Assembly: GCF_006345805.1 (NCBI RefSeq)
Contig: NC_043025.1
Coordinates: 8,866,001-8,930,000, forward strand
Source of the DNA: Octopus sinensis
Lineage: Eukaryota
Reading direction: 5' to 3'
DNA: 64,000 bases
The notes beneath the pieces are model-generated. The model had not been told where the DNA came from and ran no database searches. It was given only the letters and a program-made list of their open reading frames with translations. The position numbers and the translations under genes are program-made. Shown piece by piece: positions 29,175 to 51,960 of this stretch (its first letter is position 1; each line of letters begins with the position of its first letter).

Positions 29175-29747
29175 TCTCTATCTCTCACACACATTCACCC
29201 ATGTCATATGTGTTATGTTTTCTCTTTCACAATAATTTCAGTTAACACCCACTCCGCCAGCTACCACCCGTTCCCAGTCTACCCACGCCCCCAGAGACCT
29301 TTACTTGGCATTGATGAAATGACCGTCTTGAACATCAACGCACCCATTTTCAAAAAGGAAGGAGGATACTTCTACCAGAACAGTCCTTCCTACAGTAGCT
29401 ATCCCATATACAAGACCTATCCACAATACCACTACCCACAAACCTACCACCATTCCCATACCACCCACCACTCCATCGTACCCTACTATTATGGACATGG
29501 AGGATATGGAGGATACGGAGGATATGGAGGATACGGTCATGGAGGATTTGGAGGATACGGTCATGGAGGATTTGGAGGATACGGTCATGGAGGATTTGGA
29601 GGATACGGTCATGGAGGATATGGAGGATACGGTCATGGTTTTGGTTATGGTCATGGTCATAGTTATTATGGAGGTCACAATGGCTATCCTTATGGAGGTT
29701 ATGGCCACCACTACGGATATCCCTACTATGGTCATGGTCATTATTAA
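18249..29747 (+). CDS. Secreted Gly/Tyr/His-rich structural protein, 293 aa, 7 coding exons (suckerin-like / histidine-rich beak-protein-like)
   Basis: join(18249..18285,19208..19231,20532..20570,21072..21293,23124..23147,27924..27953,29242..29747) = 882 nt. All introns are GT-AG and phase 1, and the frame is open to TAA. The N-terminus [23 protein letters not shown] reads as a signal peptide. Built by hand; no transcript evidence. Confidence 0.8.
18422..18798. mobile_element. Tc1/mariner-type MITE (377 bp)
   Basis: ~26-bp TIRs CACTTGCGTCAGAAATTAATTAGCAC / GTGCTAATTAATTTCTGACGGTAGTG flanked by TA. Confidence 0.85.
19208..19231 (+). CDS. Coding micro-exon 2 (24 nt, AATLFNPT)
   Basis: ttttttttcctttcag|CTGCC...ACCG|gtaaga; continues the signal peptide in frame. 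Confidence 0.8.
20532..20570 (+). CDS. Coding micro-exon 3 (39 nt, [13 protein letters not shown])
   Basis: tttatatttatag|CCTAT...TCAAG|gtaaat; phase 1-1. Confidence 0.7.
21072..21293 (+). CDS. Coding exon 4 (222 nt, Gly/Ile/Tyr-rich, 74 aa)
   Basis: ttcaattag|GTTCACAAG...TTTCA|gtgagt; [15 protein letters not shown]...[12 protein letters not shown]. Confidence 0.88.
22087..22650 (-). repeat. 5 x 114-bp tandem array from a SINE 3' segment
   Basis: Period 114 (22201, 22315, 22429, 22543). Interrupted at ~22651-22870 by a Nin-SINE and resumes at ~22870. Confidence 0.85.
23124..23147 (+). CDS. Coding micro-exon 5 (24 nt, SQLSHIPV)
   Basis: tctatatctatttcacag|GTCAAC...AGTCA|gtaagt; phase 1-1. 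Confidence 0.75.
24790..25170 (-). mobile_element. Full-length tRNA-derived SINE
   Basis: Minus-strand A-box TGGCCCAGTGGTTAGG and B-box GGTTTCGATTCCC. Confidence 0.8.
25198..25450 (+). mobile_element. CR1-like LINE 3' end (subfamily 2)
   Basis: LRGHSEKL...[32 protein letters not shown] with one in-frame stop. Confidence 0.75.
25714..25749 (+). pseudogene. Probable dead paralogue of micro-exons 5/6 (TTQQIQH...)
   Basis: The preceding ~190 bp, including the acceptor atctatttcacag, duplicates the intron upstream of exon 5. The peptide resembles exon 6, and the 3' end is replaced by a SINE head with an in-frame TAA. Confidence 0.55.
25927..26527 (+). mobile_element. Two tandem CR1-like LINE 3' ends nested in a Nin-SINE tail
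   Basis: [45 protein letters not shown] followed by (ATT)n, present twice. Same family at ~47040-47430. Confidence 0.8.
27099..27513 (-). mobile_element. ~420-bp tRNA-derived SINE (second family)
   Basis: Full copy at 50047-50470 (+). Fragments at ~28545-28640, 31440-31530, 39160-39240, 47560-47730 and 50480-50600. Confidence 0.75.
27924..27953 (+). CDS. Coding micro-exon 6 (30 nt, [10 protein letters not shown])
   Basis: ttttcatttttacag|CCACCC...GTTG|gtaagt; phase 1-1. Confidence 0.8.
28720..29192. repeat. Compound (CA)n/(CT)n microsatellite just upstream of the last coding exon
   Basis: Directly visible. Confidence 0.95.
29242..29747 (+). CDS. Coding exon 7 (168 aa, Tyr/His/Gly-rich C-terminus)
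   Basis: aataatttcag|TTAACACC; [13 protein letters not shown] followed by (GGY)n and (GGYGHGGF)x3; TAA at 29745-29747. Confidence 0.92.
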
Positions 29748-30004
29748 TTCAAAGCGAAACTGGATCGAGCTGAAACAAGCTGCAGGGTAAGCTTCCACGT
29801 TTATTTCTGTCTTCCTTTTATTCTGTTATACTCTTATTCTGTTATACTCTTATTCTGTTATTCTTTGACTCATTGTAAGCTTCCACGTTTATTTCTGTCT
29901 CCCTTTTATTCTGTTATACTCTTATTCTGTTATACTCTTATTCTGTTATTCCTTGACTCATTGTAAGCTTCCACGTTTATCTCTGTCTCCCTTTTATTCT
30001 GTTA

Positions 30005-30471: not shown

Positions 30472-31430
30472 CCCCTTGACGATGGTGTTACCCGAAGCAT
30501 GCGAGACACTCCTCCGGGTTATTTTCATCTAATGAGGCCACACAAATACCTCGTGTCTATTTACGTTCATCATTACAATAACAGTGTCGTACATTTACGT
30601 CTACCGGTTTCTGAAAACGAACTGTGTGAAACTCTTTATCATAATATGATATGCATGAGTTATTCTGCTCAAGTTCAGAAAATAGCTTGCGTGTGGTACA
30701 ACGCAAAACATGGTATTATGCAAATAATACCAGTCTGGACAACGATATCATCACAGTCCGGACAACGATATCATCACAGTCTGGATAACGATATCATCAC
30801 AGTCTGGTCAATGATATCATCACAGTCCAGACAACGATATCATCACAGTCTGGACAACGATATCATCACAGTCTGGACAATGATATCATCACAGTCTGGT
30901 CAATGATATCATCACAGTCCAGACAACGATATCATCACAGTCTGAACAATGATATCATCACAGTCTGGACAATGTTATATTCACAGTCTGGACAACGATA
31001 TCATCACAGTCTGGACAACGATATCATCACAGTCTAGACAACGATATCATCACAGTCTGGACAACGATATCATCACAGTCCAGACAACAATATCATCACA
31101 GTCTGGACAATGATATCATCACAGTCTAGACAACGATATCTGGTTTCATGCCTACAGTGGTGTGAGGTGCATACAACACATTTCCATGCTGGATTCTGCT
31201 TTTTTTCCATTGGCGGTATGAAGCGCAGGAAATGTCCTCATCGGTTCAGAAGCCAGTTTGGAGTCGGTCCGGCGTGAGGACGGCCATGTGTTCGGTAGTT
31301 GGGCAGCTCGGAAACTTTAATAATTTCATTTATCAGGCATGATGATGAGTGTAAATTCGTTGATGGAGGACCGAAGTGCGAACGCAGAACTTGTAATTGA
31401 TTTGAAGACAAAGCATTGGTTTGCCGTGTT
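30472..31430 (-). mobile_element. piggyBac-like transposon 3' remnant (PGBD4-type Cys-rich domain)
   Basis: TTAA(30468-71)-CCCC terminus. The minus strand reads HFLRFIPPMEKKQNPAWKCVVCTSHHCRHETRYRCLDCD...GIICIIPCFALYHTQAIF* (stop 30675-30677). Confidence 0.8.
30731..31140. repeat. 23-bp minisatellite, ~18 copies
   Basis: Unit CAGTCTGGACAACGATATCATCA. Confidence 0.95.
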
Positions 31431-32200: not shown

Positions 32201-35200
32201 TTTTAAAAAAAATTTTGATTGATGTCTTGCAAACAACTTGCACATGCAAGTGCTACCAGTCAAAAACTCCGCATACCGGAAGCCAGCAAGCCATTTCAAG
32301 GCCTACCTCTTGACGGCATCAATGCTCACTGATATGAGGCCCCGCTTTGCTAGATCAGCTGGTTATCAAATAAAGCTCAATTTTATTCTAGCCATCACTC
32401 ATCGTCTCTTTTTAACCGAATCCAGTGGTTAGTCTTCTCCATTTTGGGGCCTACCTCTCGACGGCATCAATGCGCACCGGCCCCCTGCCCACTGATACGA
32501 GGCCCCACTTGCTAGATCAGCCGGTTAACAAATAAAGCTCAATTTTCTTCTAGCCATCACTCATCGTCTCTTTTTAGCCAATCCAGTGGCTAGCCTTCTC
32601 CATTTCGGGGCCTACCTCTCGACGGCATCAATGCGCACCGGCCCCCTGCCCACTGATACGAGGCCCCACTTGCTAGATCAGCCGGTTAACAAATAAAGCT
32701 CAATTTTATTCTAGCCATCACTCATCGTCTCTTTTTAGCCAATCCAGTGGCTAGCCTTCTCCATTTCGAGGCCTACCTCTCGACGGCATCAATGCGCACC
32801 GGCCCCCTGCCCACTGATATGAGGTCCCGCTTTGCTAGATCAGCTGGTTATCAAATAAAGCTCAATTTTCTTCTAGACATCACTCATCGTCTCTTTTTAA
32901 CCGAATCCAGTGGTTAGTCTTCTCCATTTTGGGGCCTACCTCTCGACGGCATCAATGCGCCACCGGCCCCCTGCCCACTGATACGAGGCCCCACTTGCTA
33001 GATCAGCTGGTTATCAAATAAAGCTCAATTTTCTTCTAGACATCACTCATCGTCTCTTTTTAACCGAATCAGTGGTTAGTCTTCTCCATTTTGGGACTAC
33101 CTCTCGACGGCATCAATGCGCACCGGCCCCCTGCCCACTGATACGAGGCCCCGCTTTGCTAGATCAGCTGGTTATCAAATAAAGCTCAATTTTATTCTAG
33201 CCATCACTCATCGTCTCTTTTTAACCAAATCCAGTGGCTAGCCTTCTCCATTTCGGAGCCTACCTCACGACGGCATCAATGCGCACTGGCCCCCCCTGCC
33301 CACTGATATGAGGCCCCGCTTGCTAGATCAGCAAATTTTTTTTACATTTGTCACATAAACCTAAGTCAACAACAACTACAACATCAGCAACAAAAAAACA
33401 AATCATCCTCAGCAATAACTGAAGCACCACCGTCATCAGTAATGAAGCGAAAAAAACGAAAAATGAAAACGAAAATTTTATAATGGTTTATATATGAATG
33501 TATATAAAATACAAAGAAATTTTTAATAAAAATTGTTTGTTGTGTTATAACTTCGATTTTGTTGTTTTATTTTGCATTTTTTAAAAAAAATTTTGATTGA
33601 TGTCTTTGCAAACAACTTGCACATGCAAGTGCTACCAGACAAAAACTCTGCATACTGGAAGCCAGCAAGTGTATGGGGTCATCAGGAGAGAATGTGCGCC
33701 ATTTCAGGGCCTACCTCTCGACGGCATCAATGTGCACCGGCCCCCTGCCCACTGATACGCCCCCACTTGCTAGATCAGCCAGTTAAAAATAAAGCTCAAT
33801 TTTCTTCTAGCCATCACTCATCGTCTCTTTTTAACCGAATCCAGTGGTTAGTCTTCTCCATTTTGGGGCCTACCTCTCGACGGCATCAATGCGCACCGGC
33901 CCCCTGCCCACTGATACGAGGCCCCACTTGCTAGATCAGCCAGTTAACAAATAAAGCTCAATTTTCTTCTAGCCATCACTCATCGTCTCTTTTTAGCCAA
34001 TCCAGTGGCTAGCCTTCTCCATTTCGGGGCCTACCTCTCGACGGCATCAATGCGCACCGGCCCCCTGCCCACTGATACGAGGCCCCACTTGCTAGATCAG
34101 CCAGTTAACAAATAAAGCTCAATTTTCTTCTAGCCATCACTCATCGTCTCTTTTTAGCCAATCCAGTGGCTAGCCTTCTCCATTTCGGGGCCTACCTCTC
34201 GACGGCATCAATGCGCACCGGCCCCCTGCCCACTGATACGAGGCCCCACTTGCTAGATCAGCTGGTTATCAAATAAAGCTCAATTTTCTTCTAGCCATCA
34301 CTCATCGTCTCTATTTAGCCAATCCAGTGGCTAGCCTTCTTCATTTCTGGGCCTACCTCTCGACGGCATCAATGCGCACCGGCCCCCTGCCCACTGATAT
34401 GAGGCCCCGCTTTGCTAGATCAGCTGGTTATCAAATAAAGCTCAATTTTCTTCTAGACATCACTCATCGTCTCTTTGTAACCGAATCCAGTGGTTAGTCT
34501 TCTCCATTTCGGAGCCTACCTCACGACGGCATCAATGCGCACTGGCCCCCTGCCCACTGATATGAGGCCCTGCTTTGCTAGATCAGCTGGTTATCAAATA
34601 AAGCTCAATTTTATTCTAGCCATCACTCATCGTCTCTTTTTAACCAAATCCAGTGGCTAGCCTTCTCCATTTCGGAGCCTACCTCACGACGGCATCAATG
34701 CGCACTGGCCCCCCCCTGCCCACTGATATGAGGCCCCGCTTGCTAGATCAGCAAATTTTTTTACATTTGTCACATAAACCTAAGTCAACAACAACTACAA
34801 CATCAGCAACAAAAACAACATCATCCTCAGCAATAACTGAAGCACCACCGTCATCAGTAATGAAGCGAAAAAACGAAAAATGAAAACGAAAATTTTATAA
34901 TGGTTTATATATGAATGTATATAAAATACAAAGAAATTTTTAATAAAAATTGTTTGTTGTGTTATAAGTTCGATTTTGTTGTTTTATTTTGCATTTTTAA
35001 AAAAAAATTTTGATTGATGTCTTTGCAAACAACTTGCACATGCAAGTGCTACCAGTCAAAAACTCCGCATACCGGAAGCCAGCAAGCCATTTCAGGGCCT
35101 ACCTCTTCACGGCATCAATGCTCACTGATATGAGGCCCCGCTTTGCTAGATCAGCTGGTTATCAAATAAAGCTCAATTTTCTTCTAGACATCACTCATCG

Positions 35201-38200
35201 TCTCTTTTTAGCCAATCCAGTGGCTAGCCTTCTCCATTTCGGGGCCTACCTCTCGACGGCATCAATGCGCACCGGCCCCCTGCCCACTGATACGAGGCCC
35301 CACTTGCTAGATCAGCCAGTTAACAAATAAAGCTCAATTTTCTTCTAGCCATCACTCATCGTCTCTTTTTAGCCAATCCAGTGGCTAGCCTTCTCCATTT
35401 CGGGGCTACCTCTCGACGGCATCAATGCGCACCGGCCCCCTGCCCACTGATACGAGGCCCCACTTGCTAGATCAGCTGGTTATCAAATAAAGCTCAATTT
35501 TCTTCTAGCCATCACTCATCGTCTCTTTTTAGCCAATCCAGTGGCTAGCCTTCTCCATTTCGGGGCCTACCTCTCGACGGCATCAATGCGCACCGGCCCC
35601 CTGCCCACTGATACGAGGCCCCACTTGCTAGATCAGCCGGTTAACAAATAAAGCTCAATTTTCTTCTAGCCATCACTCATCGTCTCTTTTTAACCGAATC
35701 CAGTGGTTAGTCTTCTCCATTTTGGGGCCTACCTCTCGACGGCATCAATGCGCACCGGCCCCCTGCCCACTGATACGAGGCCCCACTTGCTAGATCAGCC
35801 GTTAACAAATAAGCTCAATTTTCTTCTAGCCATCACTCATCGTCTCTTTTTAGCCAATCCAGTGGCTAGCCTTCTCCATTTCGGGGCCTACCTCTCGACG
35901 GCATCAATGCGCACCGGCCCCCTGCCCACTGATACGAGGCCCCACTTGCTAGATCAGCTGGTTATCAAATAAAGCTCAATTTTCTTCTAGCCATCACTCA
36001 TCGTCTCTTTTTAGCCAATCCAGTGGCTAGCCTTCTCCATTTCGGAGCCTACCTCTCGACGGCATCAATGCGCACCGGCCCCCTGCCCACTGATACGAGG
36101 CCCCACTTGCTAGATCAGCTGGTTATCAAATAAAGCTCAATTTTCTTCTAGCCATCACTCATCGTCTCTTTTTAGCCAATCCAGTGGCTAGCCTTCTCCA
36201 TTTCGGGGCCTACCTCTCGACGGCATCAATGCGCACCGGCCCCCTGCCCACTGATACGAGGCCCCACTTGCTAGATCAGCCGGTTAACAAATAAAGCTCA
36301 ATTTTCTTCTAGCCATCACTCATCGTCTCTTTTTAACCGAATCCAGTGGTTAGTCTTCTCCATTTTGGGGCCTACCTCCGCGACGGCATCAATGCGCACC
36401 GGCCCCCTGCCCACTGATACGAGGCCCCACTTGCTAGATCAGCCGGTTAACAAATAAAGCTCAATTTTCTTCTAGCCATCACTCATCGTCTCTTTTTAGC
36501 CAATCCAGTGGCTAGCCTTCTCCATTTCGGGGCCTACCTCTCGACGGCATCAATGCGCACCGGCCCCCTGCCCACTGATACGAGGCCCCACTTGCTAGAT
36601 CAGCTGGTTATCAAATAAAGCTCAATTTTCTTCTAGCCATCACTCATCGTCTCTTTTTAGCCAATCCAGTGGCTAGCCTTCTCCATTTCGGAGCCTACCT
36701 CTCGACGGCATCAATGCGCACCGGCCCCCTGCCCACTGATACGAGGCCCCGCTTTGCTAGATCAGCTGGTTATCAAATAAAGCTCAATTTTCTTCTAGAC
36801 ATCACTCATCGTCTCTTTTTAACCGAATCCAGTGGTTAGTCTTCTCCATTTTGGGGCCTACCTCTCGACGGCATCAATGCGCACCGGCCCCCTGCCCACT
36901 GATACGAGGCCCCGCTTTGCTAGATCAGCTGGTTATCAAATAAAGCTCAATTTTCTTCTAGACATCACTCATCGTCTCTTTTTAACCGAATCCAGTGGTT
37001 AGTCTTCTCCATTTTGGGGCCTACCTCTCGACGGCATCAATGCGCACCGGCCCCCTGCCCACTGATACGAGGCCCCGCTTTGCTAGATCAGCTGGTTATC
37101 AAATAAAGCTCAATTTTATTCTAGCCATCACTCATCGTCTCTTTTTAACCAAATCCAGTGGCTAGCCTTCTCCATTTCGGAGCCTACCTCACGACGGCAT
37201 CAATGCGCACTGGCCCCCCCCTGCCCACTGATATGAGGCCCCGCTTGCTAGATCAGCAAATTTTTTTACATTTGTCACATAAACCTAAGTCAACAACAAC
37301 TACAACATCAGCAACAAAAACAACATCATCCTCAGCAATAACTGAAGCACCACCGTCATCAGTAATGAAGCGAAAAAACGAAAAATGAAAACGAAAAATT
37401 TTATAATGGTTTATATATGAATGTATATAAAATACAAAGAAATTTTTAATAAAAATTGTTTGTTGTGTTATAACTTCGATTTTGTTGTTTTATTTTGCAT
37501 TTTTTAAAAAAAATTTTGATTGATGTCTTTGCAAACAACTTGCACATGCAAGTGCTACCAGTCAAAAACTCTGCATACTGGAAGCCAGCAAGTGTATGGG
37601 GTCATCAGGAGAGAATGTGCGCCATTTCAGGGCCTACCTCTCGACGGCATCAATGTGCACCGGCCCCCTGCCCACTGATACGAGGCCCCACTTGCTAGAT
37701 CAGCCGGTTAACAAATAAAGCTCAATTTTCTTCTAGCCATCACTCATCGTCTCTTTTTAGCCAATCCAGTGGCTAGCCTTCTCCATTTCGGGGCCTACCT
37801 CTCGACGGCATCAATGCGCACCGGCCCCCTGCCCACTGATACGAGGCCCCACTTGCTAGATCAGCCAGTTAACAAATAAAGCTCAATTTTTTCTAGCCAT
37901 CACTCATCGTCTCTTTTAGCCAATCCAGTGGCTAGCCTTCTCCATTTCGGGGCCTACCTCTCGACGGCATCAATGCACACCGGCCCCCTGCCCACTGATA
38001 CGAGGCCCCACTTGCTAGATCAGCTGGTTATCAAATAAAGCTCAATTTTCTTCTAGCCATCACTCATCGTCTCTATTTAGCCAATCCAGTGGCTAGCCTT
38101 CTTCATTTCTGGGCCTACCTCTCGACGGCATCAATGCGCACCGGCCCCCTGCCCACTGATATGAGGCCCTGCTTTGCTAGATCAGCTGGTTATCAAATAA

Positions 38201-38595
38201 AGCTCAATTTTATTCTAGCCATCACTCATCGTCTCTTTTTAACCGAATCCAGTGGCTAGCTTCCCCATTTCGGGGCCTACCTCTCGACGGCATCAATGCG
38301 CACCGGCTCCACTGCCCACTGATATGAGGTCCCGCTTTGCTAGATCAGCTGGTTATCAAATAAAGCTCAATATTCTTCTAGCCATCACTCATCGTCTCTT
38401 TTTAACCGAATCCAGTGGCCAGCCTTCTCCATTTCAGGGCCTACCTCTCGACGGCATCAATGCGCACCGACCCCCCCGCCCATTGATATGAGGCCCCGCT
38501 TTGCTAGATCAGCTGGTTATCAAATAAAGCTCAATTTTTTTCTAACCATCACTCATCGTCTCTTTTTGACCGAATCCAGTGGCCAGCCTTCTCCA
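31957..38595. repeat. Higher-order satellite: 4 blocks of [~335-365-bp spacer + 6-13 copies of a ~161-bp unit]
   Basis: Spacers start at ~31957, 33332, 34752 and 37257; unit period 161-162 (32349, 32511, 32672). Confidence 0.9.
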
Positions 38596-39240: not shown

Positions 39241-40185
39241 CTTATTTCTTTACTGCCCACAAGGGGCTACACACAGAGGGGACAAACAAGGACAGACAAA
39301 CGGATTAAGTCGATTATATCGACTTCAGTGCATAACTGGTACTTATTTAATCGACCCCGAAAGGATGAAAGGCAAAGTCGACCTCGGCGGAATTTGAACT
39401 CAGAATGTAGCGGCAGAGGAAATACCTATTTCTTTACTACCCACAAGGGGCTAAACAGAGAAGGGACAAACAAGGACAGACAAACGGATTAAGTCGATTA
39501 TATCGACCCCAGTGAGCAACTGGTATTTATTTAATCGACCCCGAAAGGATGAAAGGCAAAGTCGACCTCGGCGGAATTTGAACTCAGAATGTAGCGGCAG
39601 AGGAAATACCTATTTCTTTACTACCCACAAGGGGCTAAACAGAGAAGGGACAAACAAGGACAGACAAACGGATTAAGTCGATTATATCGACCCCAGTGAG
39701 CAACTGGTACTTATTTAATCGACCCCGAAAAGATGAAAGGCAAAGTCGACCTCGGCGGAATTTGAACTCAGAATGTAGCGGCAGAGGAAATACCTATTTC
39801 TTTACTACCCACAAGGGGCTAAACAGAGAAGGGACAAACAAGGACAGACAAACGGATTAAGTCGATTATATCGACCCCAGTGAGCAACTGGTACTTATTT
39901 AATCGACCCCGAAAAGATGAAAGGCAAAGTCGACCTCGGCGGAATTTGAACTCAGAATGTAGCGGCAGAGGAAATACCTATTTCTTTACTACCCACAAGG
40001 GGCTAAACAGAGAAGGGACAAACAAGGACAGACAAACGGATTAAGTCGATTATATCGGCCCCAGTGAGCAACTGGTACTTATTTAATCGACCCCGAAAGG
40101 ATGAAAGGCAAAGTCGACCTCGGCGGAATTTGAACTCAGAATGTAGCGGCAGAGGAAATACCTATTTCTTTACTACCCACAAGGG
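39241..40185 (-). repeat. Nin-SINE 184-bp unit x5
   Basis: Period 184 (39423, 39607, 39791, 39975, 40159); same unit as 28-770. Confidence 0.9.
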
Positions 40186-40658: not shown

Positions 40659-43600
40659 ATCATCATCATCATCATCATTTAACGTCCGCTTTCCATGCTA
40701 GCATGGGTTGGACGGTTCAACTGGGGTCTGGGGAGCCCGAAAGCTGCACCAGTCCAGTCAGATCTGGCAGTGTTCTACAGCTGGATGCCCTTCCTAACGC
40801 CAACCACTCCGAGAGTGTAGTGGGTGATTTTATGTGCCACTGACACAGGTGCCAGACGAGGCTGGAAAACGGCCACGCTCGGATGGTGTTTTTTATGTGC
40901 CACCGACACAGGTGCCAGACGAGGCTGGCAGACGGCCACGCTCGGATGGTGTTTTTATGTGCCACCGACACAGGTGCCAGATGAGGCTGGCAAATGGCCA
41001 CGATCGGATGGTGTTTGTTACATGCCCACAGCACGGAGGCCAGTCGATGCGGTACTGGCTACGGCCACGTTCGGATGGTTTTCTTGTGTGCCACGTGCCA
41101 CCGGCACTGGTACCACAAAGATACAAATTCCATTGATGTTCATCTATTTTGATTTGTTTTGATTTTCACTTGCCTCAACAGGTCTTCACAAGTGTCACAA
41201 GAAGGAAGGTATGCACAGGTGGACTGACTACGTCCCAGGTAGGGACCACAGGTTATGGCCTGACTAGTCTTGCCGGGTCTTCGGATGGTGTTTTTATGTG
41301 CCACCGACACAGGTGCTAGATGAGGCTGGCGAACGGCCACGATCGGATGGTGTTGTTACATGCCCACAGCACGGAGGCCAGTCGATGCGGTTAGGTATGG
41401 CTACTACGGCCACGTTCGGATGGTTTTCTTGTGTGCCACGTGCCACCGGCACTGGTACCACAAAGATACAAATTCCATTGATGTTCATCTATTTTGATTT
41501 GTTTTGATTTTCACTTGCCTCAACAGGTCTTCACAAGTGTCACAAGAAGGAAGGTATGCACAGGTGGACTGACTACGTCCCAGGTAGGGACCACAGGTTA
41601 TGGCCTGACTAGTCTTGCCGGGTCTTCGGATGGTGTTTTTATGTGCCACCGACACAGGTGCTAGATGAGGCTGGCGAACGGCCACGATCGGATGGTGTTT
41701 GTTATGTGCCCACAGCATGGAGGCCAGTCGGTGCGGTACTGGCTACGGCCACGTTCGGATGGTTTTCTTGTGTGCCACCGGCACTGGTACCACAAAGATA
41801 CAATTCCATTAATGTTCATCTATTTTGATTTGTTTTGATTTGATTTGATTTGATTTGTTTTGATTTCATTTTGATTTTCACTTGCCTCAACAGGCCTTCA
41901 CAAGTATCACAAGGAGGAAGGTATGCACAGGTGGACTGACTACGTCCCAGGTAGGGGCCATGGGATATGGCCTGACTAGTCTTGCCGGGTCTTCGGATGG
42001 TGTTTTTATGTGCCACCGACACAGGTGCTAGATGAGGCTGGCGAACGGCCACGATCGGATGGTGTTTGTTATGTGCCCACAGCACGATGGCCAGTCAATG
42101 CGGTACTGACTACGGCCACGTTCGGATGGATTCTTGTGTGCCACAGGCACTGGTACCACAAGATACAAATTCCATTGATGTTCATCTATTTTGATTTGAT
42201 TTGATTTTCACTTGCCTCAACAGGTCTTCACAAGTGTCACAAGAAGGAAGGTATGCACAGGTGGACTGACTAGTCTTGCCGGGTCTTCGGAAGGTGTTTT
42301 TATGTGCCACCGACACAGGTGCCAGATGAGGCTGGCGAACGGCCATGATCAGATGGTGTTTGTTACGTGCCCACAGCACGGAGGCCGGTCGATGCGGAAC
42401 TGGCTACGGCCACGTTCGGACGGTTCTCTTGTGTGCCACCGGCACTGGTACCACAAAGTGTGTGCCACCAGCACTGGTACCACAAAGATACAGATTCCAT
42501 TGATGTTCATCTATTTTGATTTGTTTTGATTTTGATTTTCACTTGCCTCAACAGGTCTTCACAAGTGTCACAAGAAGGAAGGTATGCACAGGTGGACTGA
42601 CTACGTCCCAGGTAGGGGCCATGGGTTATGGCCTGACTAGTCTTGCCGGGTCTTCGGATGGTGTTTTTATGTGCCACCGACACAGGTGCTAGATGAGGCT
42701 GGCGAACGGCCACAATCGGATGGTGTTTGTCATGTGCCCACAGCACGGAGGCCAGTCGATGCGGTACTGGCTACGGCCACTTTCGGATGGTTTTCTCTTG
42801 TGTGCCACCGGCACTGGTACCACAAAGATACAAATTCCATTGATGTTCATCTATTTTGATTTGTTTTGATTTGATTTTGATTTTCACTTGCCTCAACAGG
42901 CCTTCACAAGTATCACAAGGAGGAAGGTGTGCACAGGTGGACTGACTACGTCCCAGGTAGGGGCCATGGGTTATGGCCTGACTAGTCTTGCCGGGTCTTC
43001 GGATGGTGTTTTTATGTGCCCACAGCACGATGGCCAGTGATGCTGTACTGACTACGGCCACGTTCGGATGGATTCTTGTGTGCCACCGGCACTGGTACCA
43101 CAAAGATACAAATTCCATTGATGTTCATCTATTTTGATTGATTTTCACTTGCCTCAGCAGGTCTTCACAAGTGTCACAAGAAGGAAGGTATGTACAGGTG
43201 GATCGACTACGTCCCAGGTAGGGGCCACGGGATATGGTCTGACTAGTCCTGCCGGGTCCTCTCATGCACAGCACACTTCCATAGGACTCGGTCTTCAGTC
43301 ATTTCCTTGGTGAGACCTAAAGTTCGAAGGTCGTGCTTCACCACCTCGTCCCAGGTTTTCCTGGGTCTACCTCTTCCACAGGTTCCCTCAACTGCTAGGG
43401 TGTAGCACTTTTGTACACAACTATCTTCAGCCATTCTCGTCACATGACCATACCAGCGCAGCCGTCTCTCTTGCACACCACAACTGACACTTCTTAGGTT
43501 CAACTTTTCTCTCAAAGTACTTACACTCTGACGATTATGAACACTGACATTACACATCCATCGGAGCATACTGGCTTCATTTCTTGCAAGCTTACGCATA

Positions 43601-43890
43601 TCCTCAGCTGTCACGGCCCATGTTTCACTACCATGTAGCATGGCTGTACGTACACACGCATCATATAGTCTGCCTTTTACTCTTAGCGAGAGGCCTTTTG
43701 TCACCAGCAGGGGTAAGAGCTCTCTAAACTTTGCCCAGGCTATTCTTACTCTAGCAGTTACACTTTCAGCACACCCACCCCCGCTACTGACTTTGTCTCC
43801 TAGGTAGCGGAAGCTATCAACTACTTCTAGTTTGTCTCCCTGGAACGTGGTAGAAGTTTGTCTCTGCACATTTCCAGTGTTTATTGCTCC
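40655..43890 (-). mobile_element. 5'-truncated RTE-clade LINE with a tandemly amplified 3'UTR (~7 x 280-365 bp)
   Basis: ORF 43243-43870 ends the RT region (FRYLG...LHGSETW...RRLRWYGHV...GRGRPRKTW). GATACAAATTCC or a variant recurs about 7 times between 41120 and 43105; (ATG)n tail at ~40655. Confidence 0.9.
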
Positions 43891-43964
43891 TGAGCATCTG
43901 CCACAGACAAAAACTATATATATATATATATGTATATATATGTATAATATATATGTATATATAT

Positions 43965-45095
43965 ATATATCATCATCATCATCATCATCGTCGTTTACGT
44001 CCGTTCTCCATGCTAGCATGGTTGGACGGTTCGAACCGGGGTTCTGGGAAGCCAGAAGGCTGCACCAGGCTCCAGTCTAATTTGGCAATGTTTCTACAGC
44101 TGGATGCCCTTCCTAACGCCAACCACTCCGTGAGTGTAGTGGGTGCTTTTTACGTGCCACCTGCACAGGTGCCAGGCGGGGCTGGCAACGGCCACGGTCA
44201 GATTGGTGTATTTTATGTGCCACCGGCACGGAAGCCAGTCGAGTCCGTTCTCCATGCTAGCATGGGTTGGACGGTTCAACTGGGGTCTGGGGAGCCCGAA
44301 GGCTGCACCAGGCCAGTCAGATCTGGCAGTGTTTCTACAGCTGGATGCCCTTCCTAACGCCAACCACTCCGAGAGTGTAGTGGGTGATTTTATGTGCCAC
44401 TGACACAGGTGCCAGACGAGGCTGGCGAACGGCCACGCTCGGATGGTGTTTTTATGTGCCACCGACACAGGTGCCAGACGAGGCTGGCAGACGGCCATGC
44501 TCGGATGGTGTTTTTATGTGCCACCGACACAGGTGCCAGACGAGCTGGCAGACGGCCACGCTCGGACGGTTTTGTTACGTGCCCACAGCACGGAGGCCAG
44601 TCGATGCGGTACTGGCTACGGTCCCGTTCGGATGGTTTTCTTATGTGCCACCGGCACTGGTACCACAAGGATACAAATTCCATTGATGTTCATCTATTTT
44701 GATTTGGTTTGACTTGATTCGATTTGACTTGCCTCAACAGGTCTTCACAAGTGTCACAAGCAGGAAGGTATGCACAGGCGGACTGACTACGCCCCAGGTA
44801 GGGGCCACGGGTTATGGCTTCACTAGTCTTGCCGGGTCTTCTCACGCACAGCATACTTCCATAGGTCTCGGTCTCTGGTCATTTCCATGGTGAGACCTAA
44901 TGTTCGAAGGTCGTGCTTCACCACCTCGTCCCAGGTTTTCCTGGGTCTACCTCTTCCACGGGTTCCCTCAACTGCTAGGGATTGGCACTTTCTCACACAC
45001 CTATCTTCATCCATTCTCGCCACATGACCATACCATCGCAATCGTCTCTCTTGCACGCAACAACTGATGCTTCTTAGGTACAACATTTCTCTTAG
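43965..45095 (-). mobile_element. Second RTE-clade LINE 3' end
   Basis: ORF 44823-45086 QERRLRWYGHVARM...GRGRPRKTWDEVV plus 3'UTR. A further UTR fragment lies at 46385-46700. Confidence 0.85.
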
Positions 45096-49282: not shown

Positions 49283-49870
49283 GTTGGCAGAAATGTTAGC
49301 ACACCGAGTGAAGTGCTTAGCGGTATTTCGTCAGTGTTACGTTCCGAGTTCAAATTCCGCCGAGGTCGACTTTGCCTTTCATCCTTTCGGGGTCGATAAA
49401 TTAAGTACCAGTTACGCACTGGGCTCGATGTAATCGACTTACTACCTATGTCTGTCCTTGTTTGTCCCCTCTGTGTTTAGCCCCTTGTGGGTAATAAAGA
49501 AATAGGTATTTCGTCTGCTGTTACGTTCTGAGTTCAAATTCTGCCGAGGTCAACTTTGCCTTTCATCCTTTTGGGGTCGATAAATTAAGTACCAGTTGCA
49601 CACTGGGGTTGATGTAATCGATTTAATCTCTTTGTCTGTCCTTGTTAGTCCCCTCTATGTTTAGCCCCTTGTGGGTAGTAAAGAAGCAGGTATTTCGTCT
49701 GTCGCTACATTCTGAGTTCAAATTCCGCTGAGGTCGACTTTGCCTTTCATCCTTTTGGGGTCGATAAATTAAGTGCAAATTACGCACTGGGGTCGATGTA
49801 ATCGACTTAATCCATTTGTCTGTCCTTGTTTGTCCCCTCTATGTTTAGCCCCTTGTGAGCAATAAAGAAA
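49283..49870 (+). repeat. Nin-SINE head plus 3 tandem ~183-bp units
   Basis: GTATTTCG at ~49323, 49506 and 49690. Confidence 0.85.
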
Positions 49871-50204
49871 TAAGATTGCCAGTACTACCAGTTCCTCCTC
49901 GACCACTTATGGATCTTCTGGAAGACACTTCCATCCACTCAAAGGAAAATGGGCATAAAATGATGATGATATATATATTTGCACACACAAACACACACAC
50001 AAGTATGCATATATGTGTATGTATATATATATATATATATATAGCTGCAGGAGTGATTGTGTGGTAAGTAACTTGCTTACTAACCACATGGTATGGGTTC
50101 GGTCCCACTGCATGGCATCTTGGGCAAGTGTCTGCTACTATAACCTCAGGCCGACCAAAGCCTTGTGAGTGGATTTGGTTGACGGAAACTGAAAGAAGCC
50201 TGTC

Positions 50205-50601: not shown

Positions 50602-50619
<18 letters not shown>

Positions 50620-50657
<38 letters not shown>

Positions 50658-50670
50658 GTTGCTGCTGCTG

Positions 50671-50707
<37 letters not shown>

Positions 50708-50718
50708 CACTACTACTA

Positions 50719-50816
<98 letters not shown>

Positions 50817-50874
50817 AATACTACTACTACTACTACTACTGCTACTACTACTGCTGCTGCTACTACTACTACTA

Positions 50875-50909
<35 letters not shown>

Positions 50910-50928
50910 GTTGCTGCTGCTGCTAATA

Positions 50929-50960
<32 letters not shown>

Positions 50961-51003
50961 AATACTACTACTACTACTACTACTGCTACTACTACTGCTG
51001 CTG

Positions 51004-51056
<53 letters not shown>

Positions 51057-51160
51057 GCTGCTGCTGCTACTACTACTACTACTACTACTGTTGCTGCTGC
51101 TGCTGCTAATACTACTACTACTACTACTGCTGCTGCTGCTACTACTACTGCTACTACTGT

Positions 51161-51207
<47 letters not shown>

Positions 51208-51960
51208 AATCATTTTCATATTTCACGGAAAAGAACATTAAACCAAAAATTTAATATTTATGAACAAATTGCGTCAAACTGTAAAGAAGACAAATCCTGC
51301 TGAACAAATATGGTTAAAAATAAGAAATTCGGGCATGATAGAGAGAAAATGAGTGATTTGGGTAAAGAAAAATGCAAAAATGAAAAAGGAATTTGCTAAC
51401 ATTGGTAGAATATGATTTATCTCATGTTGTGAAGAGAGGGGGAAAAAAAAAAAATTGAAATAAATTATAAACTTGAGCAGAAAAATTTTTTTTCGTGCTT
51501 TTCTTGAACAGTTGGGCAGCTTTCAAAGTGTATTTACTGGCAGCAGCAGCAGCAGCAAAGGGTGATGATGATGATGATGAAGAAGAAGGAGAAGAAGAAG
51601 AAGAAGAAGAAGAAGAAGAAGAAGAAGAAGAAAGAGGAAAAGAAGAAGAAGAAGAAGAAGAAGAAGAAGAAGAAGAAGACGAAAAATTGCAAGAAGAAGA
51701 AGAAGAAGAAGAAGAAGAAAGAGGAAAAGAAGGAGAAGAAGAAGTGGAATTGGAAGAAGAAGAAGAAGAAGCGGAATTGGAAGAAGAAGAAGAAGAAGAA
51801 GAAGAAGAAAGAGGAAAAGAAGGAGAAGACGAAGAATTGGAAGAAGAAGAAGAAGAAAAAGAGGACGCAGAAAGCATGAAGAAGAAGAAGAAGGGGATGG
51901 AGTAGGAGGAGGAAGAGAAGAAGGAGGAGGAGGAGAAGAAGAAGAAGAAATCATCATCAC
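50620..51960. repeat. (CTA/CTG)n and (GAA)n microsatellites
   Basis: Blocks at 50622-51206 and 51560-51950. Confidence 0.95.

Follow-up and report, generated by a model that had tools for sequence, protein, structure and literature searches.

A Pro-flanked His/Thr block in a putative terminal exon

The DNA studied here, referred to below as the window, is a 64,000-nucleotide (64 kb) stretch from Octopus sinensis (contig NC_043025.1, positions 8,866,001 to 8,930,000 of the forward strand). It encodes a Pro-flanked SHTTHH block that recalls the repeated modules of the suckerins. In the reading we favour, to which we give about an even chance, the block belongs to the final coding exon of a gene that is unannotated and taxonomically restricted and that encodes a disordered, low-complexity protein consisting of a Tyr/Pro/His part and a (GGFGGYGH)n part, and the suckerin-like unit is convergent or fortuitous. 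For the unit itself, YHYP..SHTTHH..PYxY, convergence or chance is the best reading, and it does not demonstrate common descent with the suckerins.

The preliminary description of this DNA had reported the SHTTHH block at 29436-29483 of the forward strand, and direct translation of these nucleotides reproduced it exactly. The frame runs on from the block into Gly/Tyr-rich residues and ends with TAA at 29745-29747. The features of this region are as follows (the slash marks the splice boundary).

29436-29483, forward strand: Pro-flanked His/Thr block of 16 residues, from direct translation; DNA with 54% C, 29% A and 2% G
29424-29492, forward strand: extended stretch of 23 residues resembling a suckerin unit, from an hhalign match, the Smith-Waterman alignment to suckerin-1 and shuffle statistics
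29242-29747, forward strand: putative terminal coding exon with a phase-1 start, 167 full codons and TAA, giving a 168-codon open frame
29215-29241, forward strand: polypyrimidine tract and AG acceptor, ATGTTTTCTCTTTCACAATAATTTCAG/TT, read from the sequence; presumed splice site
29493-29744, forward strand: tail rich in Gly, Tyr, His and Phe, 84 residues long or 85 if the Tyr before it is counted, built on the octapeptide GGFGGYGH
28715-29174, no strand assigned: (CA)n/(CT)n compound microsatellite of 460 bp, directly upstream; 49% C, 27% A and 0% G

Anatomy and coding evidence of the exon

Judged from its sequence, the likeliest exon is 29242-29747 entered in phase 1, because a good acceptor ends at 29241. 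The exon product begins with an ordinary-looking N-terminal segment of 39 residues. This is followed by a 42-residue Gly-free tract of Tyr, Pro, His, Thr and Ser, which holds the SHTTHH block. The Gly-free runs of the product cover residues 1-21, 23-39 and 42-83, and a single Gly-rich tail of 85 residues comes after them. Within the tail, a 24-nt tandem array at 29517-29638 (5.1 copies, 97% matches) encodes GGFGGYGH. The tail contains eight GHG triplets, six of which keep to the 8-residue period, and an aromatic residue is found every 3-5 positions. The overall composition of the exon product is 28% G, 20% Y, 13% H, 8% P, 2% L and 1% A, with neither Cys nor Trp. The product was modelled from the single sequence by AlphaFold2, which gave a mean predicted local distance difference test score (pLDDT) of 46, a predicted template modelling score (pTM) of 0.13 and no secondary structure; this low-confidence model is consistent with a product predicted to be disordered.

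The exon is probably coding, if unproven, as its sequence suggests in several ways. In the N-terminal half, the exon's own frame is the sole one free of stop codons. In the tail, G accounts for 51, 52 and 0% of the first, second and third codon positions, respectively, and this pattern extends over 38 degenerate codons past the array. A second, non-repetitive Gly-rich candidate exon at 21072-21293 shows this G signature as well. The frame stays open across both halves of the exon, which are opposite in composition, and through the 38 degenerate codons at its end.

Resemblance of one unit to suckerins

The suckerins used for comparison were found with a synthetic suckerin consensus. They were Dosidicus gigas suckerin-7 (P0015, A0A075LWS6), Sepioteuthis lessoniana suckerin-1 (P0016, A0A081DU96) and a third, unnamed suckerin-like sequence from Logan contigs (P0017; genomic locus L001).

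The match proved to be wider than SHTTHH, as the exon reads YHYP-x5-SHTTHH-x3-PYxY and S. lessoniana suckerin-1 reads YHYP-x5-SHTTHH-x1-PYxY. The Smith-Waterman alignment of these two products (uncorrected for composition) gave a raw score of 68, with a 23-residue core aligned to GYHYPAATAVSHTTHHA--PYGY; in the longer span, 44 letters of the exon product face GGYGYPAATTYRRTTLNGYGGLYGGLGYHYPAATAVSHTTHHA--PYGY at the same score of 68. This score was matched by 6 of 30,000 global shuffles and, when blocks of 8, 12 and 16 residues were shuffled, by 23, 17 and 10 of 30,000, whereas the reversed query scored 44. The resulting P of about 2e-4 to 8e-4 holds for this exon alone and is uncorrected for the number of windows or motifs scanned. 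Translations of HT-rich microsatellites elsewhere in the window scored at most 46, compared with 62-68 for the exon. The hhalign comparison of the three-suckerin alignment with the exon covered 18 columns (GLHYPATTAVSHTTHHAP) at 56% identity, with a probability of 90% that is uncalibrated for low complexity.

The composition-corrected BLASTP showed much less. Against D. gigas suckerin-7 it aligned SHTTHHS with SHTTHHA only (7 residues, 6/7 identical, E=0.18), against S. lessoniana suckerin-1 it returned no alignment, and against the product of the L001 locus the E value exceeded 1. No common repeats were detected when the suckerin-like Logan contigs were compared with the window by blastn.

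The rarity of the hexapeptide was also estimated. Across all six reading frames of the 64 kb window, SHTTHH was found a single time and so was HTTHH, against 72 occurrences of HTHTH, a product of CA microsatellites. The probability of an exact SHTTHH by chance was 1e-5 when the residues of the 83-residue N-terminal half were shuffled, 2e-4 when those of the 35-residue Tyr/Pro/His block were, and 1e-4 in first-order Markov DNA modelled on the CA-rich tract. For any 6-mer of the M1 type (the Ala/Thr/His-rich suckerin module) in the exon, with a small reference set, it was about 4e-4. Taken at the level of these alignments, the resemblance of one unit to a suckerin exceeds composition alone for this exon, and it is real but local.

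Two observations concern the third suckerin-like sequence. At 461-984 of the L001 locus (Logan contig ERR12370321_4239070; also L002-L006), 3-4 [TS]VSHTTQG modules alternate with modules of the GLYGG type. P0017 is a protein call that starts at a TTG and continues past a TGA stop, and its last 19 residues are an artefact.

Comparison with the suckerin family

Suckerins, which make up the sucker ring teeth of squid and cuttlefish, are block copolymers of the form [Pro-M1-Pro-M2]n, n = 3-13, where M1 is rich in Ala, Thr and His (AATAVSHTTHHA) and M2 comprises 20-30 residues of Gly, Tyr and Leu (PMC9999432). The Ala-rich half of M1 drives the beta-sheet assembly, while the HTTHHA half is hydrophilic and pH-sensitive (PMC9999432, PMC11931252). 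His governs the solubility of suckerins and Tyr permits di-Tyr cross-links (PMC9999432). In suckerins an N-terminal signal peptide comes immediately ahead of the modules. Their genes are clustered (13 in two clusters in Doryteuthis pealeii and 16 in Euprymna scolopes) and are expressed in tentacles and suckers (Albertin et al. 2022).

The exon departs from this architecture in most respects. Instead of 3-13 alternating units it has a single His/Thr block flanked by Pro and a single Gly-rich region, whereas the retrieved suckerins have 2-5 interspersed modules. The 14-residue block contains Thr and His and no Ala, and the AATAV half present in suckerins is missing; Ala makes up 1% of the exon product versus 11-12% in the two named suckerins and 6% in the L001 product. 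Gly, Tyr and GGY are abundant in the tail, but it is 85 residues long and built on GGFGGYGH, unlike the GGL/GGY/GLY modules of 20-30 residues found in suckerins. Likewise, Leu makes up 2% here versus 12-14% in the two named suckerins and 6% in the L001 product. The exon has no paralogue in the window. Meanwhile, the H1 motif HTTHH(A) is present (SHTTHHS versus SHTTHHA) between agreeing flanks, YHYP and PYxY, and suckerins share with the exon a richness in Tyr and His.

These results bear on how the block was originally named. The preliminary description had matched it to the suckerin beta-sheet motif; the His-rich half and the module borders do match, but the Ala-rich beta-sheet half is missing. 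The term is a misnomer because the matched half is the hydrophilic H1 and the block is without Ala. The same description had proposed an ancestral or convergent single-module suckerin relative. Its convergent variant, a look-alike with HYP and PYxYG flanks, is compatible with our data, while kinship with suckerins found no support in the architecture, the Ala and Leu contents or the searches.

In a stronger form, that proposal would make the exon part of a true, highly divergent suckerin relative, either a one-unit 'proto-suckerin' or a degenerate suckerin sharing descent with the decapodiform genes. The unit does match from border to border, with YHYP at equal spacing, a 12-14-residue block ending in exact SHTTHH, then PYxYG and a GGY-rich run, and the shuffle P and the far lower scores of the HT-microsatellite peptides of the window speak in its favour. 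The single unit, the lack of Ala in the block and the low Ala and Leu contents weigh against it, as does the composition-corrected similarity, which is insignificant with all three suckerins; nor did an exhaustive protein search, described below, return a suckerin. Tandem paralogues were not found in the window, whereas suckerin genes are clustered, and for Ser the exon uses TCC where the L001 locus uses AGC/AGT. The preliminary description had also suggested a comparison of exon phases. In the L001 locus a single phase-1 terminal exon carries all modules up to the stop codon, and the exon studied here is likewise a phase-1 terminal one, but phase-1 introns after signal peptides are common, and the shared phase is weak evidence. 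We consider common descent with suckerins quite unlikely, and membership in the suckerin family is not supported by the sequence comparisons.

The simple-sequence setting of the block

The block lies in DNA of unusual base composition. The Tyr/Pro/His tract at 29386-29490 contains 43% C and 4% G, and C occupies 56% of the third codon positions of the N-terminal half, while the tail and a second Gly-rich candidate exon at 21072-21293 use A/T-ending codons instead. The (CA)n/(CT)n microsatellite at 28715-29174 translates to HTHTH...SLSLS in the exon's frame, which is already open inside the microsatellite. The codons CAY, ACC, CCN, TAC and TCC are typical output of C/A-rich simple DNA. A His/Thr run is an expected kind of product here, because the motif DNA is C/A-rich and the adjoining microsatellite reads HTHTH in frame. 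This simple-sequence setting favours convergence or chance over descent, although the exact flanks are not explained by the setting alone. The earlier caveat that a six-residue match in low-complexity sequence may be due to chance is still live in such C/A-rich DNA, yet it has to be set against the low shuffle P.

The same setting suggests a second alternative, in which there is no gene at all: a decayed C/A-rich tract joined to a GGA/TAY/GGT/CAT minisatellite would be open by chance and its peptide would never be made. A 460-bp microsatellite adjoins the frame directly, and within the frame lies a 24-nt array (97% matches). In G-poor DNA, TAA is the only possible stop, and the probability of an 83-codon open stretch by chance was about 0.2, as estimated from base composition. 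The protein collections and exact look-ups also lack the open reading frame (ORF). Nevertheless, the good polypyrimidine/AG acceptor lies precisely where the frame opens, the 39-residue non-repetitive segment is not simple sequence, and the frame is held through both halves and the degenerate end. In addition, 8 kb upstream there is another Gly-rich candidate exon, which is non-repetitive, has canonical splice sites and is compatible in phase. In view of this, we regard an untranslated, fortuitous frame as unlikely.

Several observations weigh against the reading that we prefer, namely a coding exon whose suckerin-like unit is convergent or fortuitous. Over the 24-nt array several frames are open on both strands, and the openness of the frame there is uninformative. 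Neither AATAAA nor ATTAAA occurs within 1.7 kb past the stop codon. Crude scans of the window for an ATG, a hydrophobic stretch and a phase-1 donor gave no convincing signal-peptide exon. None of the database proteins, whether transcript-derived or annotated, contains the exon sequence. Finally, pure chance is an uncomfortable explanation of the unit, given the shuffle P and the hhalign probability.

Homologue searches

In a word-indexed search with the full exon, only low-complexity GY/GH proteins were matched, and for the 85-residue N-terminal non-repeat part no protein in an index of 5.8 billion clusters shared three 5-mers. An exhaustive phmmer search of 1.84 billion representatives returned 8 matches at E≤1e-3, all of them repeat-confined GY/GH low-complexity sequences, with no suckerins among them. 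Pfam has no family for the exon product, and the exact-sequence look-up found no record of the ORF. The sole match among the PDB sequences was LSm4, which is insignificant (E=1.4). The Rfam and tRNA scans of the window gave nothing useful, and nothing relevant was found in the literature on Gly/Tyr proteins of octopus suckers or cuticle.

The best of the matches were short secreted GYGGYGHGG proteins, and one of them is named neuropeptide-like protein 29 (NLP-29) of Penaeus indicus (P0003). The exon could accordingly be imagined as part of a Gly/Tyr/His-rich antimicrobial peptide precursor of the nematode/crustacean NLP-29 type, from which cleavage at a dibasic KK site would free the GGY/GHG-rich peptide. 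In another match (P0011), a signal peptide is followed by a 16-residue segment that resembles an 11-residue stretch of the exon product. The matches are, however, compositional and repeat-confined, with E values of 1e-8 to 1e-3, and the exon product is longer, its 42-residue Tyr/Pro/His tract having no counterpart in those peptides. Also, the scans of the window found no signal peptide. An antimicrobial precursor appears very improbable to us. Generic Gly/Tyr secreted proteins, including the NLP-29-type GGY antimicrobial peptides, are the top matches of the exon as a compositional class only; they have no alignable non-repeat region, and neither high His nor the SHTTHH block is among their features.

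Similarity to histidine-rich beak proteins and a proposed mechanism

In its working principle, the tail is closest to the squid histidine-rich beak proteins (HBPs), as judged by analogy of composition. The HBPs of Dosidicus gigas, HBP-1, HBP-2 and HBP-3, likewise have C-terminal repeats of Gly, His and aromatic residues with GHG, regularly spaced Tyr/Phe and predicted disorder. HBPs are defined by C-terminal tandem GHGXY (X = Leu, Pro, Val) with optional GAGFA/GFA (PMC11931252), and they are reported only in decapodiforms (Albertin et al. 2022). In contrast to this pentapeptide, the exon repeats the octapeptide GHGGFGGY/GHGGYGGY; the comparison with HBPs was made against their published description. 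The motifs GHGLY, GHGPY, GAGFA and GFA were not found in the exon product. Its N-terminal part is Tyr/Pro/His-rich with 2 Ala, whereas that of HBPs is rich in Gly, Ala and His. HBP genes are clustered and active in the buccal mass; no such cluster is seen within the window.

Besides HBPs, the tail is similar to the Gly/Tyr domains found in suckerins, where Tyr allows cross-linking. The generic Gly/Tyr-rich secreted proteins, which also include molluscan shell-matrix proteins such as shematrins and prismalin-14, have in common with the exon product a Pro/Tyr-rich segment with GGY repeats after it.

In HBPs, deprotonation of Gly-flanked His (GHGXY) near seawater pH, together with Tyr-Tyr contacts, drives coacervation (PMC11931252). 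A mechanism that combines a pH switch with aromatic contacts is plausible for the exon product and HBPs alike. If the exon is spliced and expressed as proposed, the protein may be secreted, by analogy with squid beak proteins and suckerins. By the same analogy, its many His residues, when protonated, would keep it soluble, and their deprotonation at seawater pH, or metal binding, would lead to self-association driven by Tyr and Phe, through coacervation or aggregation. Tyr and His might then be free for covalent cross-linking into a tough matrix. We infer from these analogies that the product could be a secreted, disordered, His-switched and aromatic-driven self-assembling matrix protein.

Candidate upstream exons and flanking sequence

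Two further segments of the window were considered as possible upstream exons.

21072-21293, forward strand: Gly/Ile/Tyr-rich candidate exon, phase 1-1, with the acceptor TTAG/ and the donor /GTGAGT, both canonical
3599-3650, forward strand: weak candidate first exon, MKICKILILINGLSLIR, with the donor /GTAAGT in phase 1; 17 kb 5' of the exon at 21072

In the segment 21072-21293, only its own frame is free of stop codons, and G accounts for 45, 42 and 3% of the first, second and third codon positions, respectively. It forms a GC island amid flanks of 22-31% GC, has no tandem-repeat structure and is without a Pfam match. It lies 8 kb upstream of the exon at 29242 and would join it in frame (A+TT = Ile). 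The two exons have only composition in common. An equally good reading makes it the final exon of a separate Gly-rich gene nearby, ending with TAA at 21299-21301.

The segment 3599-3650 was the only phase-1 match of the crude scan to an ATG, a hydrophobic stretch and a donor at 5/6 positions. As a first exon it is a weak and unconfirmed candidate, as AT-rich DNA easily yields such peptides. The other matches of the signal-peptide exon scan were microsatellite artefacts. The in-frame ATG at 29208 was also weighed as a possible start that would bring its own signal peptide, and was set aside as less likely; the peptide is more probably a translation of the polypyrimidine tract, and the start context is poor.

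Just 3' of the stop codon, at 29787-30004, lies an 88-nt tandem repeat of 2.5 copies whose unit begins with GTAAGC. The sequence CAGG/GTAAGC at 29787 could be a donor inside the 3' untranslated region. Further downstream, at 30731-31140, a 23-nt minisatellite is present in 17.8 copies.

Significance of the suckerin-like unit

Suckerins and HBPs are regarded as decapodiform inventions. Both were found in three decapodiforms and not in Octopus bimaculoides (Albertin et al. 2022), and the origin of sucker ring material is debated in reconstructions of cephalopod arm armature (PMC8688392). A conserved and expressed suckerin-like unit outside the family, if true, would have consequences for the timing and manner of origin of these biomaterial proteins. 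One such possibility is that a cephalopod lineage, perhaps an octopod one, has a true suckerin-like protein of one unit, and that this unit either predates the decapodiform sucker ring teeth or re-arises de novo from CA-/GGA-rich simple sequence; we rate it as distinctly improbable. The de novo case, if true, would offer a snapshot of the birth of a biomaterial gene from microsatellite-like DNA, and the location of the motif, in C/A-rich simple DNA next to a microsatellite, points to one way in which such modules may be generated. If, on the other hand, the frame is unexpressed or the motif unconserved, the match would be an ordinary low-complexity coincidence.

Other features of the window

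The window is AT-rich and dense in microsatellites, satellites and tandem arrays resembling short interspersed nuclear elements (SINEs), as in large invertebrate genomes. A SINE-like element of about 184 nt (...CCTTTCGGGGTCGATAAATTAAGTACCAGTT...CACTGGGGTCGATGTAATCGACTT...) is abundant; some of its copies form short tandem arrays and others are dispersed. No tRNA head was recognised in it by ARAGORN or Rfam. Its copies are located as follows.

27-768: SINE-like element copies
39243-40185, reverse strand: SINE-like element copies
49322-49872: SINE-like element copies
60306-61984: SINE-like element copies
near 21420-21500: single copy of the SINE-like element

Two large satellites occupy 53617-57491 and 32323-38595. 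One of them has a 139-nt unit in 27.9 copies with 97% matches, and the other has a 161/321-nt unit in several blocks over about 6 kb. On the reverse strand, at 43243-44019, a 258-codon ORF resembles the C-terminal portion of a protein encoded by a retrotransposon (...GRGRPRKTWDEVVKHDLRTLGL...); Pfam returned nothing for it at E≤1, and an exact match is not on record. Very long arrays of ATA, TTA, TCA, CTA, GAA and TAG, reaching 720 bp, are found at 1181-4591, 50602-51949 and 59509-59974, and these trinucleotide arrays give rise, on either strand, to numerous long ORFs that are spurious and homopolymer-like.

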